DNA of 64,000 nt, taken from positions 9,616,480 to 9,680,479 of the forward strand of contig BFEA01000001.1 in NCBI GenBank assembly GCA_003427395.1. Direction: 5' to 3'. Shown here in pieces: positions 12,626 through 63,392 of the stretch (positions are counted from its first letter, which is position 1; the number at the start of each line of letters is the position of its first letter). The position numbers and the translations under genes are program-made. Below the pieces are notes generated by a model that saw nothing but the letters and a program-made list of their open reading frames with translations, was not told the origin of the DNA and made no database searches. Origin of the DNA: Chara braunii (lineage: Eukaryota > Plantae > Charophyceae).

Positions 12626-15600
12626 TAGATGTCTATCTAGAAATAACCAGTCTAAATGGTCGTAAACTTTCTCAAAATCTATAAATATGGAGACTGTATT
12701 TTGTTTAGAATGACGTGATAACATAATCAACTTATTTATTAACATGACTTTATTTTGAGTATTCCTTCTTATAATAAACCGATTCAAGTTGGATGAATAA
12801 ACCCATTCAAGCTGGATTAATATTTTTTGCAATGACCTTGGTTAGTCTATTGGCTAAAGCCATCGTCATCAGTTTATATACCACAGTCAAGAGGGTAACA
12901 AGGTGATAGTGAAGAATGTTAGTTTTATATGTTTTTTTTTATAAAGAAGAGTGAATACCCTTTGAGGGCCTTAACCCACAAATTATCCCATTTGTCATGA
13001 AATCCAAACGGCACGATAGAAATCCATAAGGTCTTGTGAGAGAAAATTATATAAGACTTTCCAAACTTCCTTGGGGAAACTATCAATGCTTGAGGTTTTC
13101 TTTTCTTCCATGAACATTAAAGTTGTTCATATTTTCTCTTTTGAAACGAACATTTATAACTCATTTTCTTGTTCTTCATGTAATGTTTTAGTCAAAGGTG
13201 TAAGAAAATCTTATATTTCTTGAATTCTCTGATTCTCAGGGATACTTTTAGTCTTCGACTTAAGAAGTTAATTGAAGAATTTCTTGCTATTTTTGTACGT
13301 AACGTTGTGGACGTGATTATTGGATCATTCCTATGGAAAATATCTTTTAGGGCTTCAATAACTGTACAATCAGAGTTTATTCTTGGCATAAAAAAAAACA
13401 TTGCATTCATTTCCCATTCCATTTGGTGTTTCCTCATCTTACCTCTAATCATTATTTTTTGCCACTTATATTTCATTTGCGTCAGCAACTGATCTTCCAA
13501 TTTTCAAATTTCTTGAGCTAGGGGTTCTAAATTTCTCATTTCTTTGGATTCCTTCCCCGGTTGTTGGAGTGATTGAATTATTTGAAGCAATAGTGGTTCT
13601 TTAAAGTGTCTTTGTGAGACAAAGGATTTATAATATTTATTGCATTTACGACCTAGAAACGTTAGGCCGTTGTTGAACCACTTTATGTCATATTGGATTA
13701 GGTCCTGTTGGCTACGCCAGAAGGTCCACACATCCTTGAGATAATATATAAAGTTATCAATTTTTAAATGAGAGATATTAAGTTTATAAAAATCTACGTT
13801 GATCTTGTTTTTTTCTGAAAGAGAGAACTGCAACACACATTCTATGATCTAGTATTGGAAAAACACTTCGTGGAAAGATCGCAATAAATTGTAATGCCCC
13901 CTGTAATGCTTCATACATTAGAATGAAATCAATACGAGATTTTTAACCCGGACTAAATTGACTTTTCCTGAAACAGGAAAACGATCGCTGTGTCGGGTTG
14001 AGTCGTCTATAGTAGGAATCAAAGAGGTTGAGAGACTGACAAAGATTATTCACTATTATCTCATATGACTCAATATATGCATGACATGGAGATGAGATGT
14101 GCCATCGATAAAAATGTCGATTCGGGGCTACATTGAAATCCCCAACCACCATGACCAAGATTCCTTGTGAAAGATAAGGAAGAGAGGACTCAAAAAAAAA
14201 TTGTCTTTCACTAACATTATTAGGTCCACATATACATAAGATATATACCACCTCCAACTGGGGCATTACTAGTACAAAAGTTAATTTTCTTTCCTCCTTG
14301 TCTACTTCCGTATAAATGGGATCCACCCTGAAATTTTAGGGAGTCCAAATGGTCACCCCCCTACTACCAGGCCTCGATGAATGGGCTCTGAAGGCTTTGT
14401 GTGGCCATATTACCTTGTGTGTATGGTGATGGACATCCGTATTCATTAGATGGGTTTCCTCAACAACGATTTCGTAAAAACGAACATTTTATATTTTTTG
14501 AATGAAATGAAAATGGTCATTTTCACCATGATTTTCGTGACTTTTGATATTTTGTTAACTCAATTTTTTAAGGTACCCCACTTTTAATTGTATTTTGTGA
14601 TCCTGTTGACAACAAATTTTACATTGCTTTCCCACAAAATTCGGGGGGTGTTACAATTTCATTGCCACTATGTGAAGCTACAAGTGTCTTTATGATGAAT
14701 TTTATTATACTTTTCAAGCACATTGATTAATATTTACTATCTTTCACAATATAAAATCACAAAATTGTCGTTTTTTTTTCTTCTTCCGGCTAATGCATTT
14801 AGTTTAAAGAAACATATTGCATATCATACTCTAAAGCACATATGATTGTCAATACATATGTGGGGTGTTACAATTTCATTACCATACTCGTTAACACACA
14901 TGTATTTAATTTTTACCGATGTATTATGTTGTCCCCGAAAATACAATCTCCTTTGCCCCCTGCCTTCCTGCCCCGCGGCGTGTTTGTCTGAATGTTACAT
15001 TTACAAAGTATCATTTGAAAATAAGGGGTGGACATTTGAAATTTAAATTATGTTTAAACAACAATGTTATTTGTATTTTTTTTTTTTTAACTTGTTTACA
15101 TAGAGAGGATACCTCAGTGTCCTCGTTAGCTCTCTCTCCCTCTTTCTCTCAAAACTATCTCGAAGCTCTCTTTATGAACGTCTACAAAAGCTAGAGATAT
15201 ATGATACATGGTCTATACTACCAAAAATACAAAATCATTTGCTGAAAAATGATGGTGAATATGTAACTACCTAAAAAAATCTGCCCTGTCAATAAGGAAA
15301 AAATACTAATTAGTTAATGATAAAAATAAAAACGCCTACTCCAACTTCAATGCACGAAAAACTCCGTGGCAAGTAAATTTCACTACCTTCATAACGACGA
15401 CTAATTAACAATCTTCTGTCAAAAGGTGCAACAACGTCGTAAGTGAATGAGGTTGTTGTGTTGCCCATTTGCTCGGCGGAGTACACTGTCCATGAGGTTG
15501 AAGTTGGTTGTTAGTTTTGTTTTCTTGTATTTCCGGTGAACCCTAACGCGTCTTGCTCTTTTATGATGACTCGCGATATCTCGACTGTGATGGCACTTCT

Positions 15601-31264: not shown

Positions 31265-31768
31265 ATGAGTACGATTCAGTCTTTCCAGGTCAGTGGATCA
31301 GTTCTGGCCGGCCTCAATCAGATTGATCTCAAAGATGTTTTTTAGTATCGATATGTCAGTGCAACTGGCTTCAAGAGAGGGGACTTATCCGACTTTGCAG
31401 TTCATGTTGAGTTTGCGGGAGACGCCATTCATGACTTGAGGGTCTACGTGAAGAAGGGTAAAGAAACACATGAGCACTTTGACTCAGTCTGGATCTCGGC
31501 TGCCAGGTATCTTGAAGAAAAAAAGAAAAAGTTCGATGAGAATGGTACCAAGTTGATTTGCAGTTTTGGGCCTAAGCTTTATACCGACTATCCAGAGCCT
31601 CAAGTACCTTTCGCTCTCACTGACGGTTCTTCCTGGGGAGACTGGGTAGATCTAACCAAAAGGTACAACTTACCTGCATCGATTGACTATGAGGTAGTGA
31701 CTAAGTCATTAGAGTTCCAACATCTCAGACGAGGGATCTTCTCTCAACCATATCTTCCTATTCTATGA
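31265..31768 (+). pseudogene. Unknown ~140-aa domain protein, copy 1 (one internal stop)
   Basis: MSTIQ...DVF*YRYV...HDLRVYVKKG...SVWISAARYLEEKKKKF; resembles the repeats at 32750-34520. Confidence 0.6.
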
Positions 31769-32412
31769 GAGGAGTTTTGTGCTATGGTCGACTTCCGTAT
31801 CACGAGGCTTGGCTGAAATTGTTCGGAGCTCGCAGGCTTCAGGTGACTTTACATTCAGAGACCACAACCTCAGGGAGTAAGGAGACATGGCTCGAAGCAC
31901 AAGAAACGCACAACAAAGTGAGATATTGAGTATGTGACCTAGAGAGATGAGTGATGACTCTTGACAAGTGTTGGTTGTGCCTCTGGATGTGTACTCTCTG
32001 AGACTATTATGAGTTCTCATTCTTCCCTCACTTACCCTTGTCATTGCTCAAGTCAACCAGTCTTGCTTCTTTTGCATTATTTTTGCTTGATGATTGCGTT
32101 ATCAGATAATTCTGTCATAGTTCTCAAAATAAAAAAATTGGTAAAATTGATGCATGCATGACATCCCATAATTTTATGATTAATATTTGCATGATTCTTG
32201 TTGTTCTGAAACAAAATAAAAAATTCCTAAAACTGGGGATCGGCGAAGACCGCAATTAAAGGGTCTCGCTCGAAGCCGGACGCAAACGACAGGAAGAGAT
32301 TTACTTTAATTAATTTATTTTGTTTACTACAATCATCATCCAAATCCTGCGTGACAGCCTGTTGGCTTTGTGGTCGGCTGAAGAGGCTCGACTGGAAAAA
32401 GTTCGACAAAAA

Positions 32413-32430
32413 TGGCGCCGTTGCCGGGGA
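32413..32430 (+). promoter_or_regulatory. Primer-binding site (tRNA-Asp type, Athila-like LTR retrotransposon)
   Basis: TGGCGCCGTTGCCGGGGA four nt after an LTR-like end GTTCGACA (32408). Confidence 0.85.
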
Positions 32431-32749
32431 CATTAATTTTTTTCGTGTCCGGAACGAGCCTGGGTTAGCAACAACTTTGAGCTTTGATTAAGACTTGAGA
32501 GTTGTTGACAATGGCTGAATTTTCAGATTGACTCTGACATCTTGAGTGAATCATTATTTTGTTGGAAGTTTTGAGTTGCTAACTGGGTCTTATCTCTGCA
32601 TGTGTGAGGTACAACACTGGACTGGGGAAGGAGACAATATTCATTGGAGAGAATCAGGCTTGATCACAGGTATGCCTTATGAACCCTTGACGCCCTTGAA
32701 GAATTGAGAAAGAAGGGAATGAGTCAGAAGTCTGAGAACTCCATCAAGA

Positions 32750-34520
32750 ATGTTAACTATTGATTCACTGAAAAAACTCTCAAAATTAACTATTAAAGGG
32801 TTATTCCCCTATAAGTATGAGCACTGTTGGGCTTACCATTCTGGCAATTCGACCATCTATGTAGTGTTGACTCGCTGCTTAGAGGAAGATATCTATGATA
32901 TTCGCCCTTATGTCAAGAAGAGAGACTACAACGATGGTGAGGTTTTTAACTGACTATGGAAAATTGTCGTCCAATCTATCTACGATGAACGGGCAGAACT
33001 AATCAAGCGAAGGAAGAAACTGGAATGGGGTTTAATGTCAGTGACCTATGAAACAATTCCAATTCCCCTTATCCCTGACAACTACTGTAATGGAAGTAAT
33101 TTGTTGCCAATAATTAACGTGGTACTGAAGTGGAAAAAATGAGAAGGTTGTTATGAGAGCAAAAAAAACTTCAGCAGAGGAAACCACACGAAGAAGACTG
33201 AAATTTGACAGAGGTTTAGGTCCAAGCAAAAAAAAAATTGAGTGTCTCCTGGGATCACTGAATGCTTTAAGTGAGAAAGAAGTGTTCCCATACAAGATCG
33301 TCAAGTATAAGATGGTCGAGAGTGGATGGGTGCAAGAACGATTCTATATCCTAATATTCTACTTTACAGACTTGGATAAATATGATGTAAGAATTTATGT
33401 TCCTAAAGAAAAAAATGTTGATGTTGTGTATAAGAGATGCTAGAGATTTGCCGATGAATTTGTACTGAAAGAGAAAAAAAGACTTGAGAGAGAAAATAGG
33501 TGCTTCATTGGATCTATTCGGCTTGTTGTCTTTGAGAGATTCTCAACTCCTCCTTTACATGATATAAATTTGTCAAGAAACAACTGATCTGCTGTGATTG
33601 AGTTTTCACTGAAAGTGATAAGAGACCAACGACACAAATGAGTCAACTATACGTACCTCCAAAAGTGAGACCCTGGTTTAGGTTGGGAAGAAGACATAGG
33701 AGACTGAGTAAGGAGGATTCTGATAAACCGCTAAATTCTTTTAATTCTATAACAAAGAGAGTTGTGATTTCCTACGAGATTGTGAAGTATGGAAACTAAA
33801 GAATCTGGGATGGGAACATGATGATATGCATGTTTTTACCTGCTATTTTATTGACGTTGATGAGTTTGACATTGAGATCTACGTGCCATGACATAGGTTC
33901 AAAGAGTATAGAAGTGGTCGATGTTGGCAACAAGCATCAGATATTGTGCATGGCGAAAGAAAAAAACTTGAACAAGAAGAGGATAGTTTCTCTTGGAGTA
34001 CCTATGTCAGACCTTTCATTGGGATACCGTCCCCTCTTGTTGAAGGGCTTACGTTTTCAAGGGACAATTGGTCAGTCATGATAGATTTTGTATGGAAGGT
34101 GAAGAGGGCTCAAGAAAAACACTCTAAGCAACAAAAATAATCATTGTGAGAGACATACTTTATGAAGTAACGGGATCTGATAATCCATTTGTAATCATGA
34201 GATATGAGATCTGTGTAAGAGGGAAATTGGTATTTCACATTCCAGCAGTCGAATTCCTGAATACTGACAGCTTGGACGTGAGAATTTACGCCCTGTCATG
34301 CCTAAAGAAGGAAGTTGACTATTTGGAATGTCGGATGAGAGCTTATGTCAGTCTTATAAAGACAAAAAAATGACTTGAAAAATTACAGAGGAAAGTAACT
34401 TGGGGGAAAGGAATAAGGCAGTTCGAAAGACTCCCTAGTTTTTTAACTACTGATGATTTTTATGATAGGAGAGACTGGTTGTCTCTCCTGGAAGCTATTG
34501 CCAGTAGGACCTCTGTGGTG
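32750..34520 (+). pseudogene. Four tandem decayed copies of an unknown ~140-aa domain
   Basis: FPYK...YDIRPYVKK; FPYK...YDVRIYVPK; ISYE...FDIEIYVP; PFVI...LDVRIYAL; spaced ~485, 485 and 410 bp, each followed by a K/E-rich helix. Confidence 0.7.
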
Positions 34521-34653: not shown

Positions 34654-34978
34654 GGGATGCTGGACCCGGTTCTCAGCACGTGCTGCTCCCCACGAATAGA
34701 TTGGAGCCTNNNNNNNNNNNNNNNNNNNNNNNNNNNNNNNNNNNNNNNNNNNNNNNNNNNNNNNNNNNNNNNNNNNNNNNNNNNNNNNNNNNNNNNNNNN
34801 NNNNNNNNNNNNNNNNNNNNNNNNNNNNNNNNNNNNNNNNNNNNNNNNNNNNNNGGGGAGCAGTGGCTGAGGCTCTTCCAGCCCTAATGGGAAGAGGCGT
34901 GTGGTTAAGTGTTGTAATCAAACTCGTAATTTGAGCCCTGGACACTAGGCCCTTAAAAAAAAAAAAAAAAAAAAAAAA
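34654..34978 (+). mobile_element. Short LINE 3' end (RNA motif plus poly(A)) spanning a gap
   Basis: Motif at 34654-34707; CTCTT-loop hairpin at ~34866; poly(A) at 34955-34978. Confidence 0.75.
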
Positions 34979-35430: not shown

Positions 35431-35782
35431 AGCCTGTTAGTGATCTCAACTGTCCATCACACGAGCCTCCGTTTGTTACATTTTATAAGTCTTCTTGGTC
35501 TCTCTTCTCTTTGTTTCTGTCTTGGAATCATGCGTGGGTTGAATTGTGTTTTGCTTTCTGGTGGGCTTACACTCTGTCTGATTTGGTGTTAGGAGGGCAG
35601 GAGATCCATCCTTCCCTGTTCGTGGGAAGTAATCAATGCCCCCTGCTCCATAGGGAGACATGACAGATACAGGGGCAATGGGCTTGAGCTTCATACAACA
35701 TATATAAACTAGACAAACATAGTCAGACAATATTGTATACACAGTAGAGCCACACCATAGAAAGAATCTTACACAATGTACA

Positions 35783-35914
35783 GGGACGCTGGACCCAATT
35801 TCTGGCGGGTGCAGCTCCCCACCAATAGATGGAGCCTTCAACACTGGGACCCACTTAACGGGGCTGCTCTTATCACCTCATTAAACCACCTGTACCTTTC
35901 CCTGCCTGAAAAAC
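35783..35914 (+). mobile_element. LINE 3' end (RNA motif, CTCTT hairpin, short A-tail)
   Basis: gggacgctggacccaatttctggcgggtgcagctccccaccaatagatggagc. Confidence 0.7.
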
Positions 35915-36879
35915 AAATGCCCGCCGGTTAACACAGGAGGCGGGCAGGATCGGGACTACCGGTGTGAAATGGTTGGTGGCGCCAGCCAAAATGAGGCCCG
36001 CGCTGGTTCATTTTTTTTGGCACACAGGACAGTTTTAGGCTCGGCAGGGATAGCTGAGAAAAAGTGGGCTTTCCCACATACGAAGTTAACAAGAAAAAAG
36101 AAGGTCACCCTAGAGGCGCCGCTTAGCGCACGCGACGCAGCAGGCTTGCGTTGACGAACGCGCGAACATCCGCCGAGGAACGTGGCCGAAGACGGAAGGG
36201 AGAGGAAAGTTGGAGGTGGGAAAAGGGGAAGCGAGGCGGGAGCAGGAGACGACCATAGCCAAAAGCGAGCCGACATACAGAAACGGGAGTTCCGTAGATC
36301 ACGACGAGGGGCCGCGGAGAAAGGCGAGCAGCAGCATCTGCGGCATTCACTTCGTCACGACGGAAGCAGGTGCCCGAAGTCAACGAACGGAGCGCGATAT
36401 CACTCCACTTCCCTTGGGGCCCCGCGTTGGGAAACTGACTTGGTGGGGAGGCGGAGGCGATAAACCGCCCGTGACAGCGACGATCGAAATACGACAACAA
36501 CGACGACCAAGCAACCTTCGACAAGATCACCAGAAACACAAGACGATCTCAGGTAGATACAGAGCTGCAGCATCCCCCGCCACCCCGACCCGGAGTTAGG
36601 GGACTGGTGGATAGAACTGCCGCTTCCCCTGCTACCTCGACACCGACCCGATCCCGACCCGATACCGGCCCGATCCCGACCCGATCCCGACCCTTACTTC
36701 CTGACGCCCCGACCCCGCCTCTACTTGGCCACTTGCCCCCCCCCCGGCCCCCCTGAAAGCCCTCCCCCGTCGTGCAAACCTTCCCCCGCCTTGCCTCCCG
36801 CCTCAATCCCGACCCTGCATCCCGACCCCGACCTCCGACGCTGCCCCTCCAGCCCTGCCTGGCCTTCCTCTGCGAGCCA

Positions 36880-37345
36880 ATTACCCCGATCTCCGACACT
36901 GCCTTTCCACCCTCATCTCAACCTCCGACGAACCCAGCCCCCCCGTCTCCCGTCTCCCGCCTACCCCGATCCCGACCGCTGACTGCCGCCCCCACCCCGA
37001 CCTCCGACACTGCCCTTCCGCCCTGATCTCGACCTCCGACTGTACCCCTCTAAACCCCCGCCCTCATCCCGACCTCCAACGAACCCGACCCCCCCGTCTC
37101 CCCCCCCACCCTGATCCTGACCGCTGACTTCCCACCCCGACCTCCGACACTGCCCTTCCGCCCTGATCTCGACCTCCGACTGTACCCCTCTAAACCCCCG
37201 CCCTCATCCCGACCTCCAACGAACCCGACCCCCCCGTCTCCCCCCCCACCCTGATCCTGACCGCTGACTTCCCACCCCGACCTCCGACACTGCCCTTCCG
37301 CCCTGATCCCGACTTCCGACTGTACCCCTCCAAACCCCGACGAAC
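36880..37345 (+). repeat. 140-bp C-rich tandem monomers in the LINE 5' region
   Basis: ccccgacctccgacactgcccttccg at 36995, 37135 and 37275; diverged copy at ~36884. Confidence 0.9.
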
Positions 37346-37624
37346 CTAGTCCCCCCGTCTCCCGCCCACCCCGTGCCCCACCAAAACCCCGACCAGCCCA
37401 GACCTCCCCGACTCATCTTCGACAACCTTCCCGTCCTGCCCTGCCTTCCACCCATCCTCACCCCGACCTCCAAACCTCCACCAACCCCGCCCCCCGGCCT
37501 CCCACCCTGATCTCGACTCCCAACCCCACCCGGCTGACCCTCGACAAGCCTCTCGCACCTCATCCGACGTGGCCAGTTTGAGCGATAGGAAACGAAAAAC
37601 TGTTGTCGGTGAGAAAAGAGACTG

Positions 37625-39262
37625 TTGTCGTGGGCAAAAAGGGAAAAAGCGGAAATCAGAATGAGAGGTGATTACGAAGGGGCTGCAGCGACGATGCAAA
37701 AAAGGAAAGGAAAAACTAAGGTGCAGCGAGTCCACCGCAGAATGGACTCTACGTTAATCTACCGAGGGATCACCAGACACTATGCTCTGGGGAACCGTGA
37801 TAGAATGAATGGTGGGGGGCAGCACATGGCGACTGGGGGAAATGGGCATACATGTGGGCCAAACGGGAGCGCTGGGTCAGGAGTCAGGGCGGTCAAACGG
37901 AAACACACGCAGAGCCCCCCCCCCATATCATGGGCAGATAAGGCGAAAAAACCCTACTCCGACAAAACACTATCAATCCAGCGAAAACAAGAAGGAGAGA
38001 AAGGGGAATTAAACTGGGAAATTCCGTTGAGAAATCTGACGACAGCAGGGACCTTCTTCATGACCCATCTCCTCTCGGCCTCCAAGAACAAAATCCTACA
38101 CCAGGAAGGGAGATCGTCATTGGTGAGGACGCTCCCCGGGGGGATGGTTAGAATACTGGATGACCTGTATACGAGGCATGCCAGCAACTGGGTGTTTCAT
38201 GAGGACGCCGCCTTCAAATCAACGAGCAATAAGGTAAGCTGGATCAGGGAACGCCTGGGGGCCTTCAAGGGGTCAGTAGAGGGCGCCCACAAATTTTTCC
38301 TCATACAGCCTGTTTCCGCATCCGTCATTACGGTCATCTGCATGTACGGGACAGACAAGAAAACAATGGACGGATGGCGATCACTGCGCTGCGAAGGATC
38401 CGAAGTGCGGATCTACCCCTGGTTCCCTCCCAAACAACAGCGACCAGAAGATAAACGAGAGCAACTTATGAGGGAATATTTTTGGGTAGAATTTAGGCAT
38501 ATCCCGATTGAAATTCAGGCTACATTTGTACAAGATTTTGCAGAGAAGTTTGATGTAGTCGATTTCATTGACCCCTTCCCACTGTACGTCCCGAGGCGGG
38601 AGGACCACCTCATGTTAGCCATACGACTAGCGGAGGGCCAAATTTTCACCATCGACGATATAATCTCTTATTGCGTCGGTGGGAAAATCTACCGCATCCA
38701 TACTGCTCATAAGCTAAGGCCCTGGTGTGTCAAATGTCAAGCATACGGGCACTTATATTCCGACACAGCATGCACCCGTCATCCTTGCATCGCCAAAGCC
38801 ACAAGACGTCTGCAAAAAGACCCATTTGCAGATACCCGGTGGAGGCCGGTCGACCCAGGCCATGAAGGCTGGGCTTACATCGATGAACCGGGACAGGGGG
38901 GGGGGGGGGGGGGGGCTGGACATGGGAAGGGCGGGGCAATCCACGGTAGGACACCGCCGGCAGGGTGGGTCCCCCCAACAACCTTGGAATCCCACTTGCA
39001 ACAACCTTCCCAGACATCTCATGGGACGCTGGGGAAAGGGAACCCGTGGGAAAGTATCAGTAAGAAAAAGCAAGGAAAACAGAAGATGATAGAGGTGCAG
39101 CCTGAAAAAGGATCAGAGCCCGGGGCCAATATTTTCTCCCTGCTGTTGAGGGATCATAGGGGGGAGGGTGGGGACTGTCCGAGACCGGAGCAGGGTCAGA
39201 CCAGCCAGAGCAGCCAGGAGGTTCGATCCCTGTTGCGACCACCAAAGAGGACCCTGCCTTGA
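37625..39262 (+). CDS. LINE ORF1 (gag-like, CCHC zinc knuckle); start uncertain, probably frameshifted at the 3' end
   Basis: 545-aa ORF with FWVEFRHIP and PWCVKCQAYGHLYSDTAC (CX2CX4HX6C), upstream of the APE-RT ORF. Confidence 0.85.
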   Translation: MSWAKREKAEIRMRGDYEGAAATMQKRKGKTKVQRVHRRMDSTLIYRGITRHYALGNRDRMNGGGQHMATGGNGHTCGPNGSAGSGVRAVKRKHTQSPPPISWADKAKKPYSDKTLSIQRKQEGEKGELNWEIPLRNLTTAGTFFMTHLLSASKNKILHQEGRSSLVRTLPGGMVRILDDLYTRHASNWVFHEDAAFKSTSNKVSWIRERLGAFKGSVEGAHKFFLIQPVSASVITVICMYGTDKKTMDGWRSLRCEGSEVRIYPWFPPKQQRPEDKREQLMREYFWVEFRHIPIEIQATFVQDFAEKFDVVDFIDPFPLYVPRREDHLMLAIRLAEGQIFTIDDIISYCVGGKIYRIHTAHKLRPWCVKCQAYGHLYSDTACTRHPCIAKATRRLQKDPFADTRWRPVDPGHEGWAYIDEPGQGGGGGGAGHGKGGAIHGRTPPAGWVPPTTLESHLQQPSQTSHGTLGKGNPWESISKKKQGKQKMIEVQPEKGSEPGANIFSLLLRDHRGEGGDCPRPEQGQTSQSSQEVRSLLRPPKRTLP

Positions 39263-39695
39263 CGACCACCGGGAACGCCCCCCCTGTCGGTGGGAAGGAC
39301 AAGTGACAGAAGGAAGAACTCCGAGTTGAGGTCCACCACCAGGCTGCACAGACAGGGCACTCCCCACAGGCGCAACAGGAGCTGCAGCCGCAGCCAGTGC
39401 TGACACAGCACGAATCGACGCCCCCCCCCCCCCGGGACAGGTGAACCACCCGGAACTGACAGATGGGGGTCTGACACAACAGTCACCATTGGCACACCAG
39501 GTGCAGCAATCGGGCCAATCCCGGCAGGGTCAGCCAGGGGAAGAGACACAACAGTCGACACAACAGTTTCACCAATTATAACAGTTGCACCAAGGGCAGA
39601 AAACAGACCGACATGTGAATGGACAGCCTGGACAGCCTGAATAGCAGACACGACTGAAACAACAGGCACGGGCAAAGCTGCTACAATAACCGGCA

Positions 39696-40673
39696 ATGGC
39701 GCCACAGCAACACGCAGGGCACCACGGGTCAGAAGAAAGTAGCCCTCAGCACACGCAGCACACGCAGACCACGCATGCCGAACATGAACATCACATGGCG
39801 GATTTCTTTTCAGATGCCTTTGGTGCAAAACAAATGGACATTGACACTCCCCCCCCCCCTCCGCCGGAGGTTGAAATGACAGACAGCCAAATGGACCCGG
39901 GCGACCCAGACGCCCCCCCCCAAGAAATGGATCTCGATCAAAAGATGCAAATAATTACGGAATGGATAATTAAACATCTTCGTCTAGAGACCGCGAAGGA
40001 AGGAGCGACGGGAGGGGATGAATACTGGGACGCGGCGTATGTTGAACTGGTCACTCTTCCGAACAACAGTCCAACGCTTAGAGCGGCGCTGGCCACTGGC
40101 CCCCTGGCCCACTTGACGTGGGCTGAGAGTTTCCAAAGGATTCTGGCCATTGCCCGCAGCCGTTTTCGCCCCCCGCTGGCCCCGGATCACGCGCAGTCCC
40201 AACCCCCCCCTACAAGGGGGGCTACACAAGGGGAAGATGGGGAGGAAGGGATGACCTCCAGGAGACTCAAGTTACGCTCACTCATAGAACGGGGCCCATT
40301 CGAACTCCCCCTGACGGACACGAACGGCATTGAAGTACTTCCGATGCGCAAAGCCGACAAGAAGTGGGAGGTGGGGCTCTCCCCGATAGGGGAGCATGGT
40401 GGGGTCACGTTGCAAGGGTGGGACTTCCCAGGCCAGATCCTGGTTATTAAGGAAAGGGACAGGACCTTCACAGACCAAATGCAAGCCTTTGTGCCCAGAC
40501 ACTACGCTCCCGGGGCAAGGGCAGGCTTAAGATTTGCAGACTGGGACATGCAGATAGCAAGGAACGATCTCTACTTGCTGTTCGAACCCAACAAAACGGC
40601 GGACCTGCGGTGGTTCAGTCATACCGCGCTGCTCGACCTACAATGTGCAAAAGTTAAGCCTGGGGAGTATTAG
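39696..40673 (+). CDS. Extra LINE ORF or ORF1 C-terminal extension of unknown function
   Basis: 325-aa ORF between ORF1 and ORF2 with a globular-looking C-terminal half. Confidence 0.6.
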   Translation: MAPQQHAGHHGSEESSPQHTQHTQTTHAEHEHHMADFFSDAFGAKQMDIDTPPPPPPEVEMTDSQMDPGDPDAPPQEMDLDQKMQIITEWIIKHLRLETAKEGATGGDEYWDAAYVELVTLPNNSPTLRAALATGPLAHLTWAESFQRILAIARSRFRPPLAPDHAQSQPPPTRGATQGEDGEEGMTSRRLKLRSLIERGPFELPLTDTNGIEVLPMRKADKKWEVGLSPIGEHGGVTLQGWDFPGQILVIKERDRTFTDQMQAFVPRHYAPGARAGLRFADWDMQIARNDLYLLFEPNKTADLRWFSHTALLDLQCAKVKPGEY

Positions 40674-40738
40674 TCTGAGGATGATGTGTGCAGATGCCTG
40701 TGTAGAATCCTGCGCAAGAAGGTCCTGCTCCTGGATAC

Positions 40739-43700
40739 ATGGGACACCACAAAATGTCGCCCCTTATGAGTACTTCGATGTCTGATTTAGATACGCTATA
40801 CCACAGAAACCCGGCCTGGAAACAATGCGTGAAAACGGCTGACCTTGACCTCCGTTCCATCAACGTGAACGGTTTGGCAACCTACAATCCAGAGAAACAA
40901 CAGGCCATTTGGGACCAACTTAGAGGGGTGGGGGGGCGGCAATGGCCGGATGTGATATGCGTACAGGAGACCCACCTACAGGATAAACCGGCGCACAATA
41001 GAACCCACAAAATGGTATGGCCCCACACGGCTGTGACAGCCTACGCCCCCAGACCCGGTTCAGCGGGCGTGGCAATCTGGATACCCCCCGACTTCAGATT
41101 TGAGATAGTCTATACGGCGGTAGACGAGGAAGAGGGAAGATGGGTGTCAGTACTAGGGATGTTGGAGCTGGAATTACTATGCATTCTGTGCATTTACTCC
41201 CCTAACACGGTTGGGGAAAGGAGAGCATTCTTGGGCAGCTTAGGGGCGCGAGTACCGGACGGCATCCCGTTAGTTATTGCGGGAGATTTTAATGCCGCCC
41301 CGGAGAGAGGGCAGGATAGATGGAACCCTCAGGGGTCCCCCTCCTTCGCAGCTGAGGAAGACGAGCAAATGATCGCAGACCTGTGCGATAGCCTCGCCGT
41401 CTTCGACACCTTCCGACGTCTGCATCCTGCGCACCGGACCTTCTCATGTATAAGGGACAACGATCCGGCCGGGCTGTCCAAATCACGTATTGATCTGATA
41501 TTACTCTCCAATGATTTAGAAGGCGCCCTCCGATGGGCTGCTATTCTTCCTCGTAGCTCGCACCCCGGTCTGGACCACAAAACGTGTGGGATAATACTCA
41601 CTATGAGGAAAAGACTAGATCAAGGACCCGGTTTTTATAAATTAAATACCTCGTTTCTACGCGATTACCAATTCAAACAGATGATCCAGTATGAATGACA
41701 GTTTTGGTGCCAACAGAAGGATCAGTTTGACTCCTTCTCTATGTGGTTCAACAATGGCTTGATCTGCCTAGCAAGGAAATGCAAAGAATTTTCTAAAGCA
41801 AAAGCGGCTCTAAGGTACCAACAGGAATTTGCCACCCATCAGGAACTGCTAAACTTGGAACACCAGGCAGACTCGCATCTTCGCACTGCAGACATCCAAG
41901 AGGTGAAGAACCAGCTTCTCCAACATGCACAGCACAGATGGCAGGGCATCAGAATACGAGGGAAAATGACAAAGTTTACCCAGGAAACTACAATGGATAC
42001 CCATTTCTTCAGCATGGCGACAGCCCGTGCAAGACGTACGATTATTGAAACATTGTATGATCCAGGAAGAAAGAATGAGATAGCAACCACTACTGCACAC
42101 TGCACCCTGATCACACGTAGTTTCTTCAAACATCTCTATGAATCCCGGCTTCCCACCCCGCGAGGGGAGGCATGGACGCGAGAGCTGGAAGACTTCCTAG
42201 CACCCATGGACAAACAACTCTCCCCAACACAACAAGAGCACCTGGAACGTCCCCTAACAAAGGACGAGATATGGGCAGCGCTACTCCAGATGAGGGAAGA
42301 TAAGACACCAGGCATAGACGGCTTCCCCAAAGAGTTCTGGGAAACAATGTGGCTAGAACTGAGTACAGACCTGTGGGCGTTCTACCAACAAGTTTGGGAG
42401 AACGGGAAGATGGGGGAAATAGTGGGGAGAGGAGTGGTGACCCTGTTGTACAAGAAAGGGGACAAAATGAACATTAAGAACTACAGACCCATCACTCTCC
42501 TTACAGTTGTCTATAAAATCCTCTCCAAGGCCCTGGCGAACTGTATGGCAGAGATCTTGTTGGACGTGATCCACCCAGCCCAGACTGGATTTATGGCTGG
42601 TCGGAACATACAAGAGAATATCCTGCTTATAAATGAAGTTGTTTGCCTAGCGAGGCGAAACCGGGCAAACGCGGCAATTGTCTTCATCGATTTTGAGAAG
42701 GCATACGATCACGTTGACTGGATCTTTTTTGACAAGTCCTTGGAAAAAATAAACTTTGGGTCAGTTTTTAGAAGATGGGTACGCATCTTGCATCAAAACG
42801 CCACCACCTGTGTACAGTTAAATGGGTCGGTGGCACCCCCCTTTGAGCTCCAACGATCGGTCAGACAAGACGACCCCATCGCCCCTTATCTCTTTCTGGT
42901 CATCATGGAGGCTCTTTCCGCTAACCTAAGGAAAAACAAAGACCTAACCCGAATTAAGATCCCCAATATTCCGGAGGAGGCGGTGCCCATCTGTTCCTTG
43001 TTCGCGGACGATCTTACTATCATGGTTGAAGCGACAGCACCGAATACGAAAGAAATCCAGACCCTCATGAACCGTTTCAGCCGTGTGTCGGACATGATGG
43101 TTAATTGGGGACAGAAAACAGTGGGGTGGTGGCTACACCACCATGGGGGTAGACCGCCAGAAAACCCACGTATAACTGGGCTCCCTCCGGATGACCCCCT
43201 TAGGGTCTTAGGCTTGTCACTCACAGCCAAAGGGAAACCTGTTACAAATGACGAGTGGCTGATGGGATCGGCACGGGCTAAGTTGCAGCAATGGAACCAC
43301 AAGCACACTTCAATCTTTGGGCGGGCCCTGGTCATAAATAATGTCGTGCTGGCAACCCTTTGTTATCGAGTTGTTCTTTGGCCCATCAGTAAAGGAGGGC
43401 TGAAGGCGCTCAAACAACAACTAGCAGCCTTTTTATGGAGAGGGGACAGCAGTAACACCCATGTCATTAGTAGGGTGGCATGAGATTCGGTGGTTCAGCC
43501 CAAGGTGGGGGGAGGGCTTGGGATAGTGGATCCCTCCACGCAGTTTCAGGCCCTGAGTGTCCACTGGATCCAACATATTATTTTCGAGACATCCTCCCCT
43601 TGGGCTCCCCTGGCGCTCGCGCAAATTGCGGCCATGGCCCTGGAAGCCCCACCAGAGGTAGACCCCCTCATATGGCTGGAGGACAGATATTGGAAACTCC

Positions 43701-45322
43701 CCAGGAAATACGCGAATGGCGACCCAGTTAATGAACACTGGACATGCCTTCTGCGTACATGGAGGAGACTTCCACTCCCCGACCTCCCCGGCCCGGACAG
43801 ATGGGAGGAGATAATTAGGCAACAGCTGTTCGGAAATTGGTTAATTACAGATTCCCTCGGACAGGTTAGGAATAACTCAGACTCCCCTAGGAAAATCTGG
43901 GTGAAACATGGGATGTTGATGGTGGGGGATTTATGGGATCAGGAAAAAGGAGAATGGAAAAGCGCGGCGACGTTAAAAGGTTGTTTGCGTTACTGCCGCT
44001 CCCTCGAGTCTTCAATCGAAGAACTCATTGAAAGCTTCCCTATCCAATGGTACACTAAGTTCAAGAAGGGCCCCACGGTCGAAGCGGCGGACTGGGTGGG
44101 GCTTCCTGGCCGAGGATTACGAGTGGGTCAAGTGCTCCTGGTAGACCAGGATCAAGCCCTGATTGATTGTCACACTATGGCCGAATCAGGGCGACTACTC
44201 CAAGGGAACAGACGACCCACCATTTGGGAAAGAACATAAGGGGTCTACAGGATTAGGGTGATTGAGGATGGGAAGGGTTGGAGAGCATATCGTGCAATGA
44301 CCCCAATTGAGAACCTCCCCTTTGACCCGCAAGAGTGGCAATGATCATGGAAGGGCAGAAGAGGCAAGAGAGGGCGGGTGGGGGGGGAAGGAAGCACAAT
44401 CCAATTAGCTGCTCTAAAAACCAAGACCGTTTACCGGATGCTCAGGCCCAAACTTGGACTGCGAGATGTGGTAGAAGACAGATGGCAGCGCCATCTAAAC
44501 GTGGACCGGAGCGTACTCAAACCGGTGCAATGGTTTGGCAAGTACCAAAAGAGGCCGGCAAAAATTTCTGCGCTACAATGGCAAATTAGTCACCGTTGCC
44601 TGCCGACCAATAACTAGATCATCGATCACACACAGCTCAAACAACAAGGAAGGGCACTTCCCTGGTGCCAGTGATGCTTTCAGAACTTCCCCGGGAGAAA
44701 GTGCCCGGAGACGATCGAGCACATCTTCCTGCAATGTCCGGCGGCCGTCCTGCTCTCGAGCTGGTGGGACAGGATCTGGCGGCACATCGTTCCAGGCTCA
44801 TTATGGCCCTGGGACTGGCGGGCAATCCTGTTGGGACACTGCCCCCACCTCCGCGACAGCACCTTCGTAGCAAACATGTTCTCCCTGGGACGGCGTACAA
44901 TCCTCTGGACCATATGGTGGCGAAGATGTACCCTGGAACTCGAAGGGGGAAGAGTGGAGGAGGGGGAGGTTACAGAGCAGATCCGGCTGCTCTTCCAACA
45001 GGAGATCATGGCTCAATGGCACAGCGTAAAAGAAAAACTGAGTCAGACACACAGCAAGGGGGATATTAAAAATATTATCTCCCGGTTCTGTGAAAACTGG
45101 CTGGGGGGGGAGAGGGAAGGCTGGGTTGCAAGGGTTACTTGGTCAGGAGACAGGCGGGACTGTGGAGAAGGGCAGGAGGGGGTTCTGGAAAGAGACTACC
45201 AGCTCCTATTTAGAGATTGGACAAGGGTGGACCCCGGGGAACAGCTGAGACCCGCGCAGGAGTTCGGCGATCCCTTTCCCCCTCACGCCGGGGCTCTGGA
45301 AGAATACTTGGGGACCACCTAG
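40739..45322 (+). pseudogene. LINE ORF2: APE endonuclease, reverse transcriptase, C-terminal CCHC finger; single frame with 6 premature stops
   Basis: SINVNG, VQETHL, AGDFN, SRID, DH; KTPGIDG, NYRPITLL, DFEKAYD, RQDDP, LFADD, GGLGI; CQ*C...ETIEHIFLQC; ORFs at 40739, 41741, 43490, 44378 and 44831 share one frame. Confidence 0.96.
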
Positions 45323-45896
45323 ATTACTCTGCCGACAGTCTGCATTCTACTGTGAACAGTTTTTGTTCTACGCCAAGAATGCTAGAAGGTCAGTGGGCAC
45401 TAAAGGAAGTTTACATACGGGACGCTGGACCCGTTTTCCAGCACATGACCTTCTTCATGTTTTCAGATTTTTTAGCCTCTTTTCAGGAATGTTCAGACAT
45501 TTGGATAGATATTTTCAGATATTTTTAGATAATTTTCAGACATTTCAGATATTCCAGACCAGGGATATGGAGAGGTTACAGGGGTAGGCTTGCCGACTTG
45601 ACCCTTCCAGCTGGGCCCGGTTCCCAGTAGATGAGGCTGTATTTTTCATAAAAGATTTCGGCTGATTCCCTTTTTTCTTCTCTTTGCTTTAACAGGCGCC
45701 ATGAGAGTAATGGGTGGATGGCAGAAGCAAGGGGATGGAGGGAGACTCCACCGGTGCCCCCCGGTGGGTCACCCCCCAACACCCGACCCTGATGCAGGTT
45801 AGGGATGGAAGAGTAGAGTGGATATGGGACGCTGGACCCGTTTCCAGCATTTTGGCGTCACCTCATTGATGTACTGTGTGGCAAAAATGTATTTTT

Positions 45897-46023
45897 GGGA
45901 CGCTGGACCCGGTTTCCAGCAGGTGTTGCTCCCCACCAATAGATGGAGCGGCCCGCTAGGCAAAGCCTCAATCCCGGTGGTTCTCTTACCACCACCAGGA
46001 TAGAGGTCTTGCACAAGGGCCTT
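45897..46023 (+). ncRNA. Conserved LINE 3'-terminal RNA structure (two pseudoknots plus long hairpin)
   Basis: GGG-AC-GCTGG-A-CCC-N5-CCAGC-A-GGTG-NN-GCTCC-C-CACC-AATAGAT-GGAGC; covariation across six LINE ends in the window. Confidence 0.7.
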
Positions 46024-46288
46024 AAAAAAAAAAAAAAAAAAAGAGTTAACAAGAAAAAGAAAAAAAAAGGAAAAGGAATCATGACCTACAGCTCCTTCAC
46101 AGCCTAGCTGCCTTTACAGGATGCATGTTTATTTATTTATTTATCTATCTATTTATTATTTCTAAAGGGTGACAGCCTTGAGGTGTCATTGTCCAATTGA
46201 GCAGCCCATGGTAATTCAGAATTATTTCATTACATTTATTTACTTCTTCTGGGGCCAGGACCCACTAGCGCACTTCATGTGTGGCAGA

Positions 46289-50112: not shown

Positions 50113-50209
50113 TACTGGTGGTTTAATGACTCTCTTTCTCCAGAGAATGCATCTGCTGGCAAACTTCTTCCTCTTCATACACAACGGTTGTCCCTAGCCC
50201 GACAAACAA

Positions 50210-51728
50210 TGCTCCAACATCTTCCAACAATATTATCATCAAATCAAAAGGAACAGTTGGAGGAGCCACTAACCACAGACGAGTTGTTGGAGGCCCTTAA
50301 AGGGATGGAGGACGAAAAAACCCCAGGTCTGGACTCATTCCTGAAGGACTTCTGAATTTAGTACTGGGACATCTTCCAAAAAAACATGCATAGATTTGTG
50401 CAGGCGGTACAGGAGGAAGGATCGTTTGGGGGCCTAATCAGTCAAGACGTTACCACAATGCTCTACGAAAAAAAGGGATAAAGCTGACATTAGGAACTAC
50501 CAACCAATCACACTCCTCCCCCTTCCCTATAAAATGGTTTCAAAGACACTGACAAACCGCCTGCTCCCACAGATGAACCACCTTATCTTCCAAGACCAAA
50601 CCGGATTCATGCCACAAAGAAACATTTAGGACAACGTGCTCCTAGTGAATGAAACCATTAAATATGTTCGTCAACATTGCAAGGAGGCTGCAATCTTGTT
50701 TATAGACTTTGAGAAAGCATATGACCACGTAGATTGAGACTTCCTGGACTGCTGCCTAGAGAAAATGAATTTCGGATTGGGCTTCAGGGCATGGGTCACC
50801 ATAATGCACAAATTTGTTGCCATGAACATCGTGGTCAACGGTCATTTGTCTCCTCCATTTGCGCTCCAGCGGTCGGTCCGCCAAGGGGAACCGGTGACCC
50901 CCCTCCTCTTTGTGTTGATAATGGAGGCATTGGCCGTAATGATAACGGTCAGCCCTGCGATAGGACGCATAGATATCCCAAAATTGCCCCCACATATGGT
51001 CCCGGTCACATCTCTATTTGCAGATGACCTTACAATCCTCATTAAGGCCTCAACTGCATCTCTCAAAGCGCTCACAGAAACCATCCAGACATTCGTAGTG
51101 GCGGCAAATGGGGCTTGAACGACACTTGGCCCACCACGACATAGTTGGGATGAAACGGCCTGAAACAATGTTCAGTGGGATCTAAAAAACGACCCGTTGT
51201 GGGTCAAAATGCTGCACCTATGGAGGCTGATGGGGCCAACCAAAAAGTCCCCTCCCCTCAGATAGCAAGAAATATGGAGATAATCGATATTTGGGAACCC
51301 CGAAGTGTGTAATGGAAATAGGAAGCCCTTCTCCCTAGCAGCTAACTCTCAATGGCTTACATGAGTAAGGAGTGGTATTTACACGGTGGACGACCTTTGG
51401 GATAGTTAGAGGGGTGACTGGAAAACAGCCGAATTACTGCGACCAATCTTGACACGTATTAAGCAAAGTCACGAGAAGTTGGACCGAATCCACAGGGCGA
51501 CCTCGCCCACGTGGGTAACCGCCCTGCAAAACGGCCCATCAACCCGTAGTATGGACTGGGTCATACACGGCATCAGGAACACCATACCAATGACTTTGTA
51601 GGTCAATGCACTGGTCAAGAGGCGCAATTGCAAGTTTACATACCAAACATGACCAAGGCACGGTGGGTGCTGCTGAAAAGGGATAGTGATCAGGACCGCA
51701 CACTCCCGGTTGAAGGATTGACTACTAG
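50210..51728 (+). pseudogene. Decayed LINE reverse-transcriptase fragment
   Basis: EKTPGLD, FIDFEKAYDHVD, QRSVRQGEP, SLFADD; stops, frameshifts and an internal deletion; cut by the LTR at 51729. Confidence 0.9.
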
Positions 51729-56515: not shown

Positions 56516-58379
56516 ATGGATCCACACAGAGATCAGTTGTGTGATATGATTCGGCATTGTTTCCTTTCTGGAGAAGAAGATGACGATGTAGCGGGGAGAT
56601 ATCTTGCTGCCTCACGGGAGGAAGGCTCTGACACGGTCATTATCGATCTTAACCCAATGGCCTCAGATGCTACAGTTGAGTATCTGAGACTCCATGCAGT
56701 TTTAGCTCTATTTCAGGGCCTCAAAAACAACGTGCCTTTTGCACACAAAGAATCATGGATCCGCTCGGTGGAAGTTGGATGGGATGCTACCATGGAAAGT
56801 GGACACAGGGGTAGAGTTAAGCCCGAAGGAGCTAATATGGTTTCCTATCTAGCGGTTAATCATGCCCTCAGAAATTGGTCGGTAGATACAGTGCAAAAAG
56901 AGGAACAGGTGACTGCTGGGGGAAAAATTTGTAGAGTGTTATACAAATCTTGCGCTACCCCTGCTGAACAAGCGAAAGTCAGAGAGGACGCTCAGGCTTC
57001 AGTATATTGGATTATGGTTCTCAGAGTGTCACTCATTGCAATGCCCTTTTTGAAAGCATCGGTTACTAAAGCGTTTGGGGAGGTCCTCAAAGCTTATCCT
57101 CCGGAGCAGAACAAACTGGAACCTCAGCCGGTCAATCGAAGATATGATCTTCACCCTCGGGCTAAACCTCGGATCAGTAAATATCTCAAAGTTCAATCAC
57201 ACCATGACTGGCATAAAGTTGAAGTTGTGACCCAAGACATTCCCTGGTCAACACTCAGAGCAGATGATCTTTCATCTCCCGAAGACAGCGTTCACCCTTT
57301 TGAGGTCAACACATATCTCAGTCAATCTCTACCACAGCCTGCTCAGTGGCAGGTCTTTTTCTGGTTCCCTTCTATCTCTGCCAACGACCTGCTCAGTCAA
57401 TCCCCTGGAGTCCAGGGTTATCAATGCTGGCAGGGACCCTCGAATTTTTTCTGAGTTCAGTTTGTATACGGGACGCTGGACCCGCTTTCCAGCAGGTGAC
57501 GCTCCCCACCAATAGATGGAGCCTCTCCCCAACTGGTAGTGGTGTCTGCTCTTATCAGCATCACTACCATCGGCGGGGGTGTTTTTTGTCAAAAAAAAAA
57601 AAAAACAAAAAAAAAAAAAACATTCCCTGGTGCATAGAGTGCAGATGGTATGGTCACAAATCGGGTGACTCTCAGTGCCCAAAAAAGTCTGTACAGACCT
57701 CGACAGGCCAGACATCTGGTATGGGTCCTTCTTCTGGACCCCCCCCCCACCTGTGACTGGACAGGACACATTATCAGGAATAGCTCCTTCCGGACTTGGG
57801 AGAGGTTCGACCAGTGGAGGCCCAGCTTCTGGTTCTCCCTTGGCTGCATTTGGTATGGGTGGGCCCTCATTACCAGCCGCAGTTGTTTTGGATTCAGAAA
57901 AATATGTTGGTCAGTCCCCTGTTGCATCAACAGTTGGTGCTACTCTAAACCCGCCTCCATCGAATATGCCCTTGGGAGAACAAAACGTGCCGAACCTGCA
58001 GACTGAGTCTATACCAGTGATTGATAATGAGACTGCAAAACACACCGATGATGCTACTCGTTTGGCTCCTGAGTCCCCTCTCTCATATGGAGGGCCAGAA
58101 GAGTTCATGTACCCTCAAAAAGCCCCTTTGCCAGTGCAGAGAACAAAGATACTTGCTGGCGGACCCAAAACACAGGCCCAAAAACCATATGCAAGACCTG
58201 ATCATGGTGGTAGTGCTGATACTCTGAAGAATGACAGTGATAAACATGTGTCATGGGCTGATATGGCAGAACACGAACGGTTGAGACCGTCTGAACAAGG
58301 TGAGATACAGATTGATGCAGAGAGTATTGCTCGCCAACAAGGTGATATAAATCCTGCTATGCCAGCCTCAATCCTTTGA
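56516..58379 (+). pseudogene. LINE ORF1 of a second family, interrupted by a retroposed insert
   Basis: YWIMVLRVS; removing 57249-57631 rejoins QDIPW|CIECRWYGHKSGDSQC (CX2CX4HX6C); frameshift in a C-run. Confidence 0.85.
57249..57619 (+). mobile_element. 5'-truncated LINE 3' end (or LINE-tailed SINE)
   Basis: TSD ACATTCCCTGGT at 57237-57248 and 57620-57631; RNA motif at 57470-57522; hairpin; poly(A). Confidence 0.9.
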
Positions 58380-62120: not shown

Positions 62121-63392
62121 ATGGTGGAACCCGGAATCGGGGGTGAAAACGACGGCGACAACCACGCGGGGATGGCCAATCATCCCCTATACTTTGTACC
62201 TCCTCCCTCCGAAGTTCCAATTTTTTATGAAGATGACACCGATCCTCACACCTGGCTAGCTGCCTTGAAAGCCCAGGGCTGGTCAGACCAATTGCTCCAA
62301 GAACGAATTCTCGGAAGGTTAGCCGGAACCGCTTTTGAGTGGTACGGACAAAACCCCTTCACTAATTGGGCAGCCTTCCAGAGGAAATTCCTCGATAGAT
62401 TTGATCACATCGCACCAGGTCAATGCCTCCGTTTAATAAAGGAATACACACAGCAGCCTCGGGAGACCTTGGCTAGATATGCTGAACGTTTTACGTACCT
62501 AGCCGAACGCTCCGGGGTGGATGAGAAAATGGTACAGACTGATTTCATCAGAGGACTGTCAGATTCTCGTCTGCGGAAAAAGATCCGCAAGAAATGCAAC
62601 CCTATAGAACATACCCTGACGGAGCTAATTCAGTACGCAATTAAGTACGGGAAAGAAAATTACGATGTGGGCCTGGACTCAGAATCCGACGAAGATGACC
62701 CTTCGGGTGTTCGACGCAATAGCTACTCCGCTACGGCACGAATGTTCGAAGATCGCTTCGGGTTGGGTCCGGCAAAAAAAGGCTCGGATCGGAAAGCTTC
62801 TTCCTCTGCTTCGGCCTCCCGACGCCCTAGTCAAATGCAAGGAGGCCAGGGCGAGAAAGAAATATCCATGAAAGAGGTCGCGGCCCAACTAGTTACGGTA
62901 GTAGCCCCGTTGACGGAGTTTGTTCAAGGTCTGCAACGACAACGCATAGCCGCCGCACAATGGCAACAGGCGGCTATGGCTGCCGGAGCCCCTATGATAA
63001 GATTGGCCGTGGCCGGGGCTGTCCCACCCCTACGCTGTTATAATTGTAATCAGCCAGGCCACCTTGCGAAAGATTGTCCGAAACCTCGAATTCAGGGCGG
63101 GCCCACCGGACCTTCCCAAATCCCGCTGGCTGCTCCCACCGCTGCAGGACAGGGGAGGGTAGCCACGGTAATGGACACAGGAACGACGGAGATGGTGACC
63201 CCTGCGGCCACTGAGATAGGACCCGATGAGTATATGGTGGCAGCGATGTTCGAACCCGGGACCATCGGAGTGATATGTCACGTCCAATGGATTACCGAGG
63301 AAAGCGACCTCGGGCCGTGGCGACCAGGATTCGAAGATCTTGCGGCACCTGGTCCTGAATACATGGCCATATCGACGTATCGGATGCCTTGA
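62121..63392 (+). CDS. gag: Retrotransposon Gag (capsid plus CCHC zinc knuckle)
   Basis: LAGTAFEWY, WAAFQRKFLDRF, QQPRETLARYAERF, FIRGL, CYNCNQPGHLAKDC. Confidence 0.93.
   Translation: MVEPGIGGENDGDNHAGMANHPLYFVPPPSEVPIFYEDDTDPHTWLAALKAQGWSDQLLQERILGRLAGTAFEWYGQNPFTNWAAFQRKFLDRFDHIAPGQCLRLIKEYTQQPRETLARYAERFTYLAERSGVDEKMVQTDFIRGLSDSRLRKKIRKKCNPIEHTLTELIQYAIKYGKENYDVGLDSESDEDDPSGVRRNSYSATARMFEDRFGLGPAKKGSDRKASSSASASRRPSQMQGGQGEKEISMKEVAAQLVTVVAPLTEFVQGLQRQRIAAAQWQQAAMAAGAPMIRLAVAGAVPPLRCYNCNQPGHLAKDCPKPRIQGGPTGPSQIPLAAPTAAGQGRVATVMDTGTTEMVTPAATEIGPDEYMVAAMFEPGTIGVICHVQWITEESDLGPWRPGFEDLAAPGPEYMAISTYRMP

Follow-up and report, generated by a model that had tools for sequence, protein, structure and literature searches.

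A conserved pair of predicted pseudoknots in the 3' tails of Chara braunii LINEs, a possible core of a composite 3'-end signal

LINEs and motif copies in the window

The stretch of Chara braunii DNA analysed here (64,000 nt, called the window below) contains a full-length LINE of the L1 clade, about 9.95 kb long (36099..46043, plus strand), which was delimited by its target site duplication (TSD), Pfam matches and translation. In this element an ORF1 with a zinc knuckle is followed by another open frame, then by ORF2, a 3' UTR of about 700 nt and an A-tail (46024..46042), and the whole is bordered by a 15-bp TSD (36084-36098 and 46044-46058). ORF2 is interrupted by stops and frameshifts and carries an endonuclease (EN), a reverse transcriptase (RT) and a C-terminal zinc motif (Pfam matches Exo_endo_phos and RVT_1). 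Assignment to the L1 clade is based on the ORF1 zinc knuckle, the APE endonuclease, the RT, the C-terminal zinc motif, the poly(A) tail and the TSD, all of which were found; the closest relatives of the RT are C. braunii proteins, at 62-63%. The frame between ORF1 and ORF2 (39690-40670, plus strand) encodes 327 aa without a Pfam match and has a 28% relative at the equivalent place in L002, one of the further sequences cited here by L numbers. A second L1-clade LINE occupies the minus strand (8905..14470), its ORF2 being about 38-45% identical to that of the main LINE. A third LINE RT fragment (50197-51562, plus strand; 49% to the main LINE), the 3' end of which is absent, and an LTR-retrotransposon gag with a zinc knuckle (62121-63392, plus strand) were also noted.

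A preliminary description of the window had reported a motif of about 53 nt at six places, and it was recovered at all of them (45897, 57470, 35783, 34654, 8974 on the minus strand, and 8732), together with every compensatory and G.U stem variant named there; the 8732 copy is degenerate, as had been stated. Five copies agree without a single mismatch with a degenerate pattern of 47 nt, for which 100 shuffles gave an expectation of 0.00, and this pattern, having been derived from the same copies, demonstrates recurrence rather than independence. The mean pairwise identity of the six copies is 0.81 in the motif, 0.46 in the 53 nt upstream and 0.51 in the 53 nt downstream, the two latter values being the level of unrelated sequence with the aligner used. 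The flanks had been called unalignable, which holds for their sequence but not for their structure, since a long hairpin with a conserved loop is common to the downstream flanks.

Attribution of the motif to six divergent LINEs could be maintained for the copies at 45897 and 8974, which are joined to ORF2 in the window, but not for the other four. The 57470 copy belongs to a 5'-truncated retro-insertion of about 370 nt (57249..57620, plus strand) within ORF1 of another LINE, with the module at 57470-57522, a hairpin at 57525-57579 and a tail at 57591-57620; it is flanked by a 12-bp TSD (57237-57248 and 57620-57631), after which the host frame resumes in a zinc knuckle, and this TSD rules out an ORF1-only, HAL1-like element. 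No ORF2 was found within the window upstream of the modules at 8732, 34654 and 35783. The first of these (8732..8867, plus strand) combines the degenerate module with an intact hairpin (8786-8855) and a short A-tail. The second (34654..34707, plus strand) is the CGUG/CACG variant, and the third (35783..35875, plus strand) carries the G.U variants and a conserved hairpin loop (35866-35875) on a decayed stem. The statement that the motif always stands shortly before an A-tail must be restricted accordingly: 35783 is without a clean tail, and 34654 precedes an N gap, the next A run lying 301 nt further on. In the minus-strand LINE the module (8974-8922) is followed by the A-tail directly after its second half, without a hairpin.

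Upstream of the 34654 module (31300-34450, plus strand) lie decayed tandem repeats of a protein domain that was not recognised, with a D-x-R-(V/I)-Y-V-like word. They have no Pfam match and suggest an RT-less unit bearing the LINE tail. An apparent partial seventh copy at 8481 was rejected as an assembly artefact, as it lies inside a 100% identical 251-bp duplication beside a Nextera junction adapter. The affected segment (8303-8776) contains the mate-pair junction adapter at 8535-8553, and such adapters also occur in L001 and L009.

Structure and covariation of the pseudoknots

In the main LINE, the first predicted pseudoknot, PK1 (45897..45920, plus strand), consists of a 3-bp stem 1 (GGG/CCC), a 2-nt loop 1, a 6-bp stem 2, no loop 2 and a 4-nt loop 3. 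The second, PK2 (45922..45949), consists of a 4-bp stem 1 (GGUG/CACC), a 2-nt loop 1, a 5-bp stem 2, a single C as loop 2 and AAUAGAU as loop 3 (45938-45944). Stem 2 of PK1 had earlier been drawn with 5 bp and is corrected here to 6, the extra pair being A11-U19, or G-C in five copies. Loop 1 of PK2 had been given as a fixed 2 nt with four variants; the length stands, and nine different letter pairs were found. Loop 2 of PK2 is C in 39 of 40 copies.

A 27-copy alignment gave pairing in 92.6% of the cells of the four stems and double changes in six pairs against 1.5 in shuffles; it misplaces PK2 stem 2 in copies with longer loops, and a structure-anchored alignment was used later. Eight double changes were kept, two of ten being discounted as products of a misparsed decayed copy, with a maximum of three in the re-pairing null; independent compensatory events are few, about eight. 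In stem 2 of PK1, C-G is replaced by U-A on two occasions, each in a different RT clade, and A-U by G-C on five. In PK2 stem 1, the first pair changes from G-C to C-G in one subfamily and once from G-C to A-U, and the second from G-C to C-G in four of the tails described below as type B, where stem 2 also changes (G-C to A-U and U-A to C-G). Stem 1 of PK1 showed no double change in 51 copies, in about 90% of which it is complementary and conserved.

Both PK2 stems are thus compensated and its loop lengths are sterically normal, which supports PK2 as an H-type pseudoknot; PK1 is likely to be one as well, its crossing stem being conserved without covariation. The earlier drawing of two adjacent H-type pseudoknots is supported for PK2 and probable for PK1, and the proposal of a conserved cis-acting RNA structure that is more strongly constrained than its flanks finds support, with covariation in three of the four stems. 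PK1 and PK2 may each be regarded as a unit, because either occurs without the other. When 396 kb were searched for neighbouring pairs of H-type pseudoknots with these dimensions, irrespective of sequence, the matches were the copies of the motif, simple repeats and some five isolated others.

One might instead suppose that there are just two ordinary hairpins, a ribozyme, or a neutral likeness due to recent common descent, which even taken together are highly improbable in our estimation. The plain hairpins find some support in PK1 stem 1, which lacks compensatory change, and in ViennaRNA predictions, where nested alternative folds are the minimum free energy structure in some copies. On the other hand, PK2 stem 1 covaries across stem 2, and a nested long hairpin between the PK1 and PK2 strands was rejected on finding 0 double changes and 36 broken cells. 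The ribozyme function suggested earlier is unsupported, as no catalytic core of a known ribozyme is present; hammerhead and twister readings of the motif and of the upstream modules were discarded by eye, the core residues being absent. Recent descent is contradicted by the comparison of the window LINE with L001, where the motif is 98% identical and the RT DNA 65%. A search of the window against Rfam yielded no family matching the motif, with 0 matches at the gathering score and only chance matches at E up to 10.

The compact, G+C-rich pseudoknots also bring to mind an exonuclease roadblock, of the Xrn type (5'-3') or against the exosome (3'-5'), protecting the 3' part of the RNA. Flavivirus xrRNAs show tandem redundancy, to which the doubled module bears a likeness, and three short insertions have their start 55-61 nt ahead of PK1, while another two start within the module. 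This reading is nonetheless very unlikely: there is neither a three-way-junction ring fold nor an Rfam xrRNA match, short 5'-truncated copies are normal for L1, and no pile-up of read starts was seen in a fragmented library that could hardly reveal one. Stalling of the RT at the knots might likewise be considered, and the five short truncations near the module are too few to judge it.

Elements flanking the pseudoknots

The preliminary description left out 3'-end formation and overlooked two flanking elements, an upstream UGUA and the terminal hairpin. In the main LINE, UGUA stands 5' of PK1 (45888..45891, plus strand) as a candidate far-upstream or CFIm-type element; across the copies it occurs at most 20 nt upstream in 21 of 33, against a shuffle mean of 4.5 and maximum of 12, at varying offsets in unalignable flanks. 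After PK2, most copies fold a hairpin of 55-75 nt (z -4.9 to -6.4) with a free stem sequence and a conserved UCUUA loop; that of the main LINE (45950..46021; z -6.4) has the apical loop (G/U)CUCUUA(U/C)CA, as seen from the loop consensus and the folds of all copies. Of 25 tailed copies, 6 have no hairpin, and no hairpin was found that had a tail while lacking the pseudoknots; the pseudoknots are taken as the constant part for this reason. Hairpin-only SINE tails and tRNA heads were not found in 10 loci.

The hexamer in loop 3 of PK2 reads AAUAGA, or AAUGGA in type B. Its distances to the tail form two groups, 7-26 nt for the six hairpin-less copies and 66-87 nt for the 19 copies with a hairpin, and the latter collapse to 10-24 nt when the hairpin is looped out.

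Internal duplicates of the motif behave differently from terminal copies. PK2 with its loop is intact in none of 12 internal duplicates versus 22 of 30 terminal copies (Fisher p 1e-5, the copies not being independent), 6 of the 30 counted as terminal consisting of PK1 only, and PK1 is retained exactly in the internal duplicates. Inside the main LINE, a stand-alone PK1 without PK2 is located at 45419..45442, another with a loop shorter by one letter at 45826..45848, and a decayed PK1-like remnant with the sixth pair in the G-C form at 45610..45627 (all on the plus strand). PK1 alone was also observed shortly before A-rich tails in L001 (49623 and 22888, minus strand) and in L007 (20306, plus strand), where an inverted PK1-like copy comes after it.

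As many as four PK1 units can occur in one series, with spacers that are unrelated to one another, and the motif is independent of RT lineage; both observations would suit a host-protein platform raising translation or stability, like the upstream pseudoknot domain of tobamoviruses. Consecutive small H-type pseudoknots in the 3' UTR are common to both systems, and the TMV domain stimulates translation (PMC5382211). However, tobamovirus RNA ends in a tRNA-like structure without poly(A), and poly(A) can replace the TMV domain (PMC5382211), while Chara LINE RNAs already have poly(A). There is no sequence match in Rfam or in viral contigs, where PK1 was not found, so that an origin from viruses is unsupported. 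The spacing rule is also left unexplained, and we regard such a platform as unlikely.

Tail types and relation to the RT

The RT-domain tree divides the Chara elements into two well-supported clades; it contains no named references and does not separate Tx1 from a plant L1 subclade. The motif occurs on clade I and, in clade II, on the P0141 family (two loci), the RT of which is 31% identical to the window RT and 43-48% to kin whose conserved tail is another one, type C. When the window LINE is compared with the P0141 element by blastn, the motif is the sole match, 96% over 47 nt (45 of 47 letters). A single clade of motif carriers is rejected by the AU test (p-AU 6e-5), applied to a group defined after a first tree had been seen. 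The motif may have been inherited from an ancestor and then frozen, or entire 3' UTRs may have been exchanged; in neither case does it co-evolve with one RT.

Type C tails of RT clade II (L006 ~17118 and ~20418, L007 ~6854, L009 ~14756 and L010 ~17236, plus strand; L001 ~6681, minus strand) consist of a hairpin, GAUAA, another pseudoknot-like fold (CCGG..GAGG..CCGG-CCUC), a linear A/U-rich stretch of 30-45 nt and the A-tail, and are 88% conserved. They are without PK2, and linear A-rich words like AUGAAU or AAUGGA precede the tail. Type B tails (L001 47393 and 5317, L003 6412 and L008 54689, minus strand; L002 21529 and 28603, plus strand) carry PK2 with compensatory changes after a different 5' unit, a CCGG/CCGG stem possibly crossed by CUU/RRG.

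These relations bear on a reading of the module as a docking site of ORF2p for the choice of template in target-primed reverse transcription (TPRT), the pseudoknots and hairpin holding the A-tail in the RT site. The module adjoins the tail, the tail is present on a unit without ORF2 (34654), and one RT clade has a tail type of its own. In vertebrate A-clade R2, a pseudoknot, hinge and stem-loop lie, as in Chara, at the extreme 3' end of a non-LTR retrotransposon RNA (PMC11601368); R2 differs in its single pseudoknot of divergent sequence, the lack of a poly(A) signal and its RLE endonuclease, whereas Chara has two classic H-type knots of near-invariant sequence on an APE-type L1 with a poly(A) tail. 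A conserved structured tail is also common to Chara and the stringent LINEs, such as eel UnaL2, zebrafish ZfL2-1/2, monocot-1a L1 and Chlamydomonas L1-1_CR (PMC4176376, PMC3472496). A monocot L1 lineage keeps a 3' hairpin with a variable stem and a conserved UCU loop, UCU being contained in the Chara loop as well, and the ancestral plant L1 has been proposed as a stringent type (PMC3472496).

Known stringent ORF2p proteins, including those of zebrafish LINEs, read only their cognate loop (PMC4176376), whereas the Chara motif hardly differs between elements whose RTs are 31% alike and is lacking in closer relatives. The Chara tail is thus conserved and structured without being specific to one RT family: the pseudoknot pair is common to RT clades, and the hairpin is dispensable. 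Docking also predicts neither the UGUA excess nor the loss of PK2 in internal copies. The family-specific form proposed earlier is weakened by the RT tree; in another version, a common element would be read by several Chara RT families and could coexist with a 3'-end signal. On balance, docking of ORF2p is the main rival explanation, although less probable than not.

Abundance and expression

Ten loci of C. braunii, together with two contigs from metagenomes, yielded about 27-30 further full copies and many partial ones; these two were the only contigs returned by the metagenome search, and both contain Chara-like LINE pieces. The density in the sampled LINE-rich loci, roughly one copy per 12-14 kb, suggests about 100,000 copies per Chara genome by extrapolation from this biased sample. 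DNA matched to 57230-57640 at 80% likeness comprised 13,323 contigs, with maximum depth at 57468-57523, where it exceeds that of the hairpin region about tenfold and that of the upstream spacer by far more; the sequence differences listed are located in loops (PK1 loop 3 and PK2 loop 1). Poly(A) RNA reads cover the module with a strand bias of about 3:1, in the sense direction if the protocol was of the usual stranded kind. According to read data, a second species carries the same 53-nt motif with different flanks. The motif is absent from one Closterium LINE locus, a single locus that proves little.

A possible structured signal for 3'-end formation

The explanation that we consider best, with a probability of about 0.4, is that the double pseudoknot forms the core of a composite signal fixing the 3' end of the LINE RNAs. 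The RNA would be arranged as UGUA (the upstream element), PK1, PK2, the optional hairpin, a short, often U-rich stretch and poly(A). Loop 3 of PK2 (AAUAGA/AAUGGA) would act as a plant-type near-upstream element (NUE), and the hairpin as a spacer looping out 50-75 nt, placing the cut at an effective 7-26 nt from the hexamer. The resulting poly(A) end would prime TPRT, as in other L1s. The presumed reader is the slowly evolving host 3'-end machinery rather than the ORF2p of each family, with CPSF- and CFIm-like factors recognising the hexamer and UGUA, and PK1 probably has a separate, additive role in protein binding or RNA protection. The narrower proposal of a polyadenylation signal presented by a pseudoknot, in which the Pol II hexamer lies in the loop, is brought to the cut by the looped-out hairpin and is portable between distant LINE clades in on the order of 100,000 Chara copies, is more tentative.

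Formation of the 3' end is favoured because the hexamer spacing falls in the plant near-upstream range after collapse of the hairpin, because the UGUA excess fits upstream elements, and because internal duplicates never keep an intact PK2 loop; an intact internal copy would end the transcript there, so that loss of the loop is to be expected in them. The linear A-rich words before type C tails and the presence of the motif on distant RT clades also speak for this reading. In plants the NUE is situated at 10-30 nt from the cleavage site, AAUGGAAAUGGA is the mutagenesis-verified poly(A) signal of pea rbcS-E9, and the upstream element of CaMV is made up of TTTGTA repeats (10.1101/2020.06.08.140475). 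One type B loop reads AAUGGAAAUGGA letter for letter. The plant signal, composed of a far-upstream element, a NUE and a cleavage element (10.1101/2020.06.08.140475), is thus matched by the UGUA-type word and the AAUGGA/AAUAGA hexamer at an effective 10-30 nt before the tail, but plant signals are linear, and the Chara hexamer lies within a pseudoknot loop with a hairpin spacer behind it. In mammals, folded spacers bring the poly(A) signal and the cut together (PMC5859970, PMC11535156).

Several points speak against a 3'-end signal. Plant-type spacing is reached only as an effective distance with the hairpin folded, and the mRNA signal of Chara itself may differ. Any H-type pseudoknot needs an A-rich loop 3 for minor-groove triples, and CPSF may have no access to a loop that is occupied in this way. 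A clear A-rich NUE is missing from three streptophyte algae, Chara not among them (PMC1868727). A fixed distance to the tail is equally expected under docking of ORF2p, UGUA accompanies 15/30 terminal and 3/12 internal copies and so does not distinguish the two groups (p 0.18), and the reads over 57230-57640 gave no evidence of non-templated poly(A) at the predicted site.

Among the papers listed by our literature search there is no description of the Chara motif and no report of a pseudoknot in an L1/Tx1 3' UTR. Structured LINE tails are already known; the near-invariant tandem pseudoknot common to L1 clades is new. Should the loop prove to be a poly(A) signal, its structured form would be unusual and would also reveal Chara's own signal; should it prove to be an ORF2p site, RTs only 31% alike would have that site in common. 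Either would be new for L1 biology. Chara, being close to land plants, provides a precise and abundant test object for Ohshima's stringent-ancestor model of plant L1, and its copies include naturally occurring deleted and duplicated forms. For RNA-templated gene insertion, too, a compact and portable 3' module may be of interest.

Two further conserved modules lie upstream of the motif in some of the tails. The U module, with variable stems around the conserved internal loop UYAAUC / YAAUCAAUG, was found in nine full copies and belongs to some tails of type A and some of type B (window 57388-57434 and 35612-35645; L005, L001, L002 and L012). Upstream of the 57470 module it forms an internal-loop hairpin (57388..57434, plus strand; z -2.6) that coincides with a second read peak at 57384-57439. 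The V module consists of CUGGCGCC, a variable hairpin and GGUGAAGAGG and is probably a three-way junction, a hammerhead having been rejected for want of a GAAA strand. It occurs in the window at 9045-9023 (minus strand) and in L012 (18725 and 19118), L005 (263), L008 (47769 and 40647) and L002 (15087).
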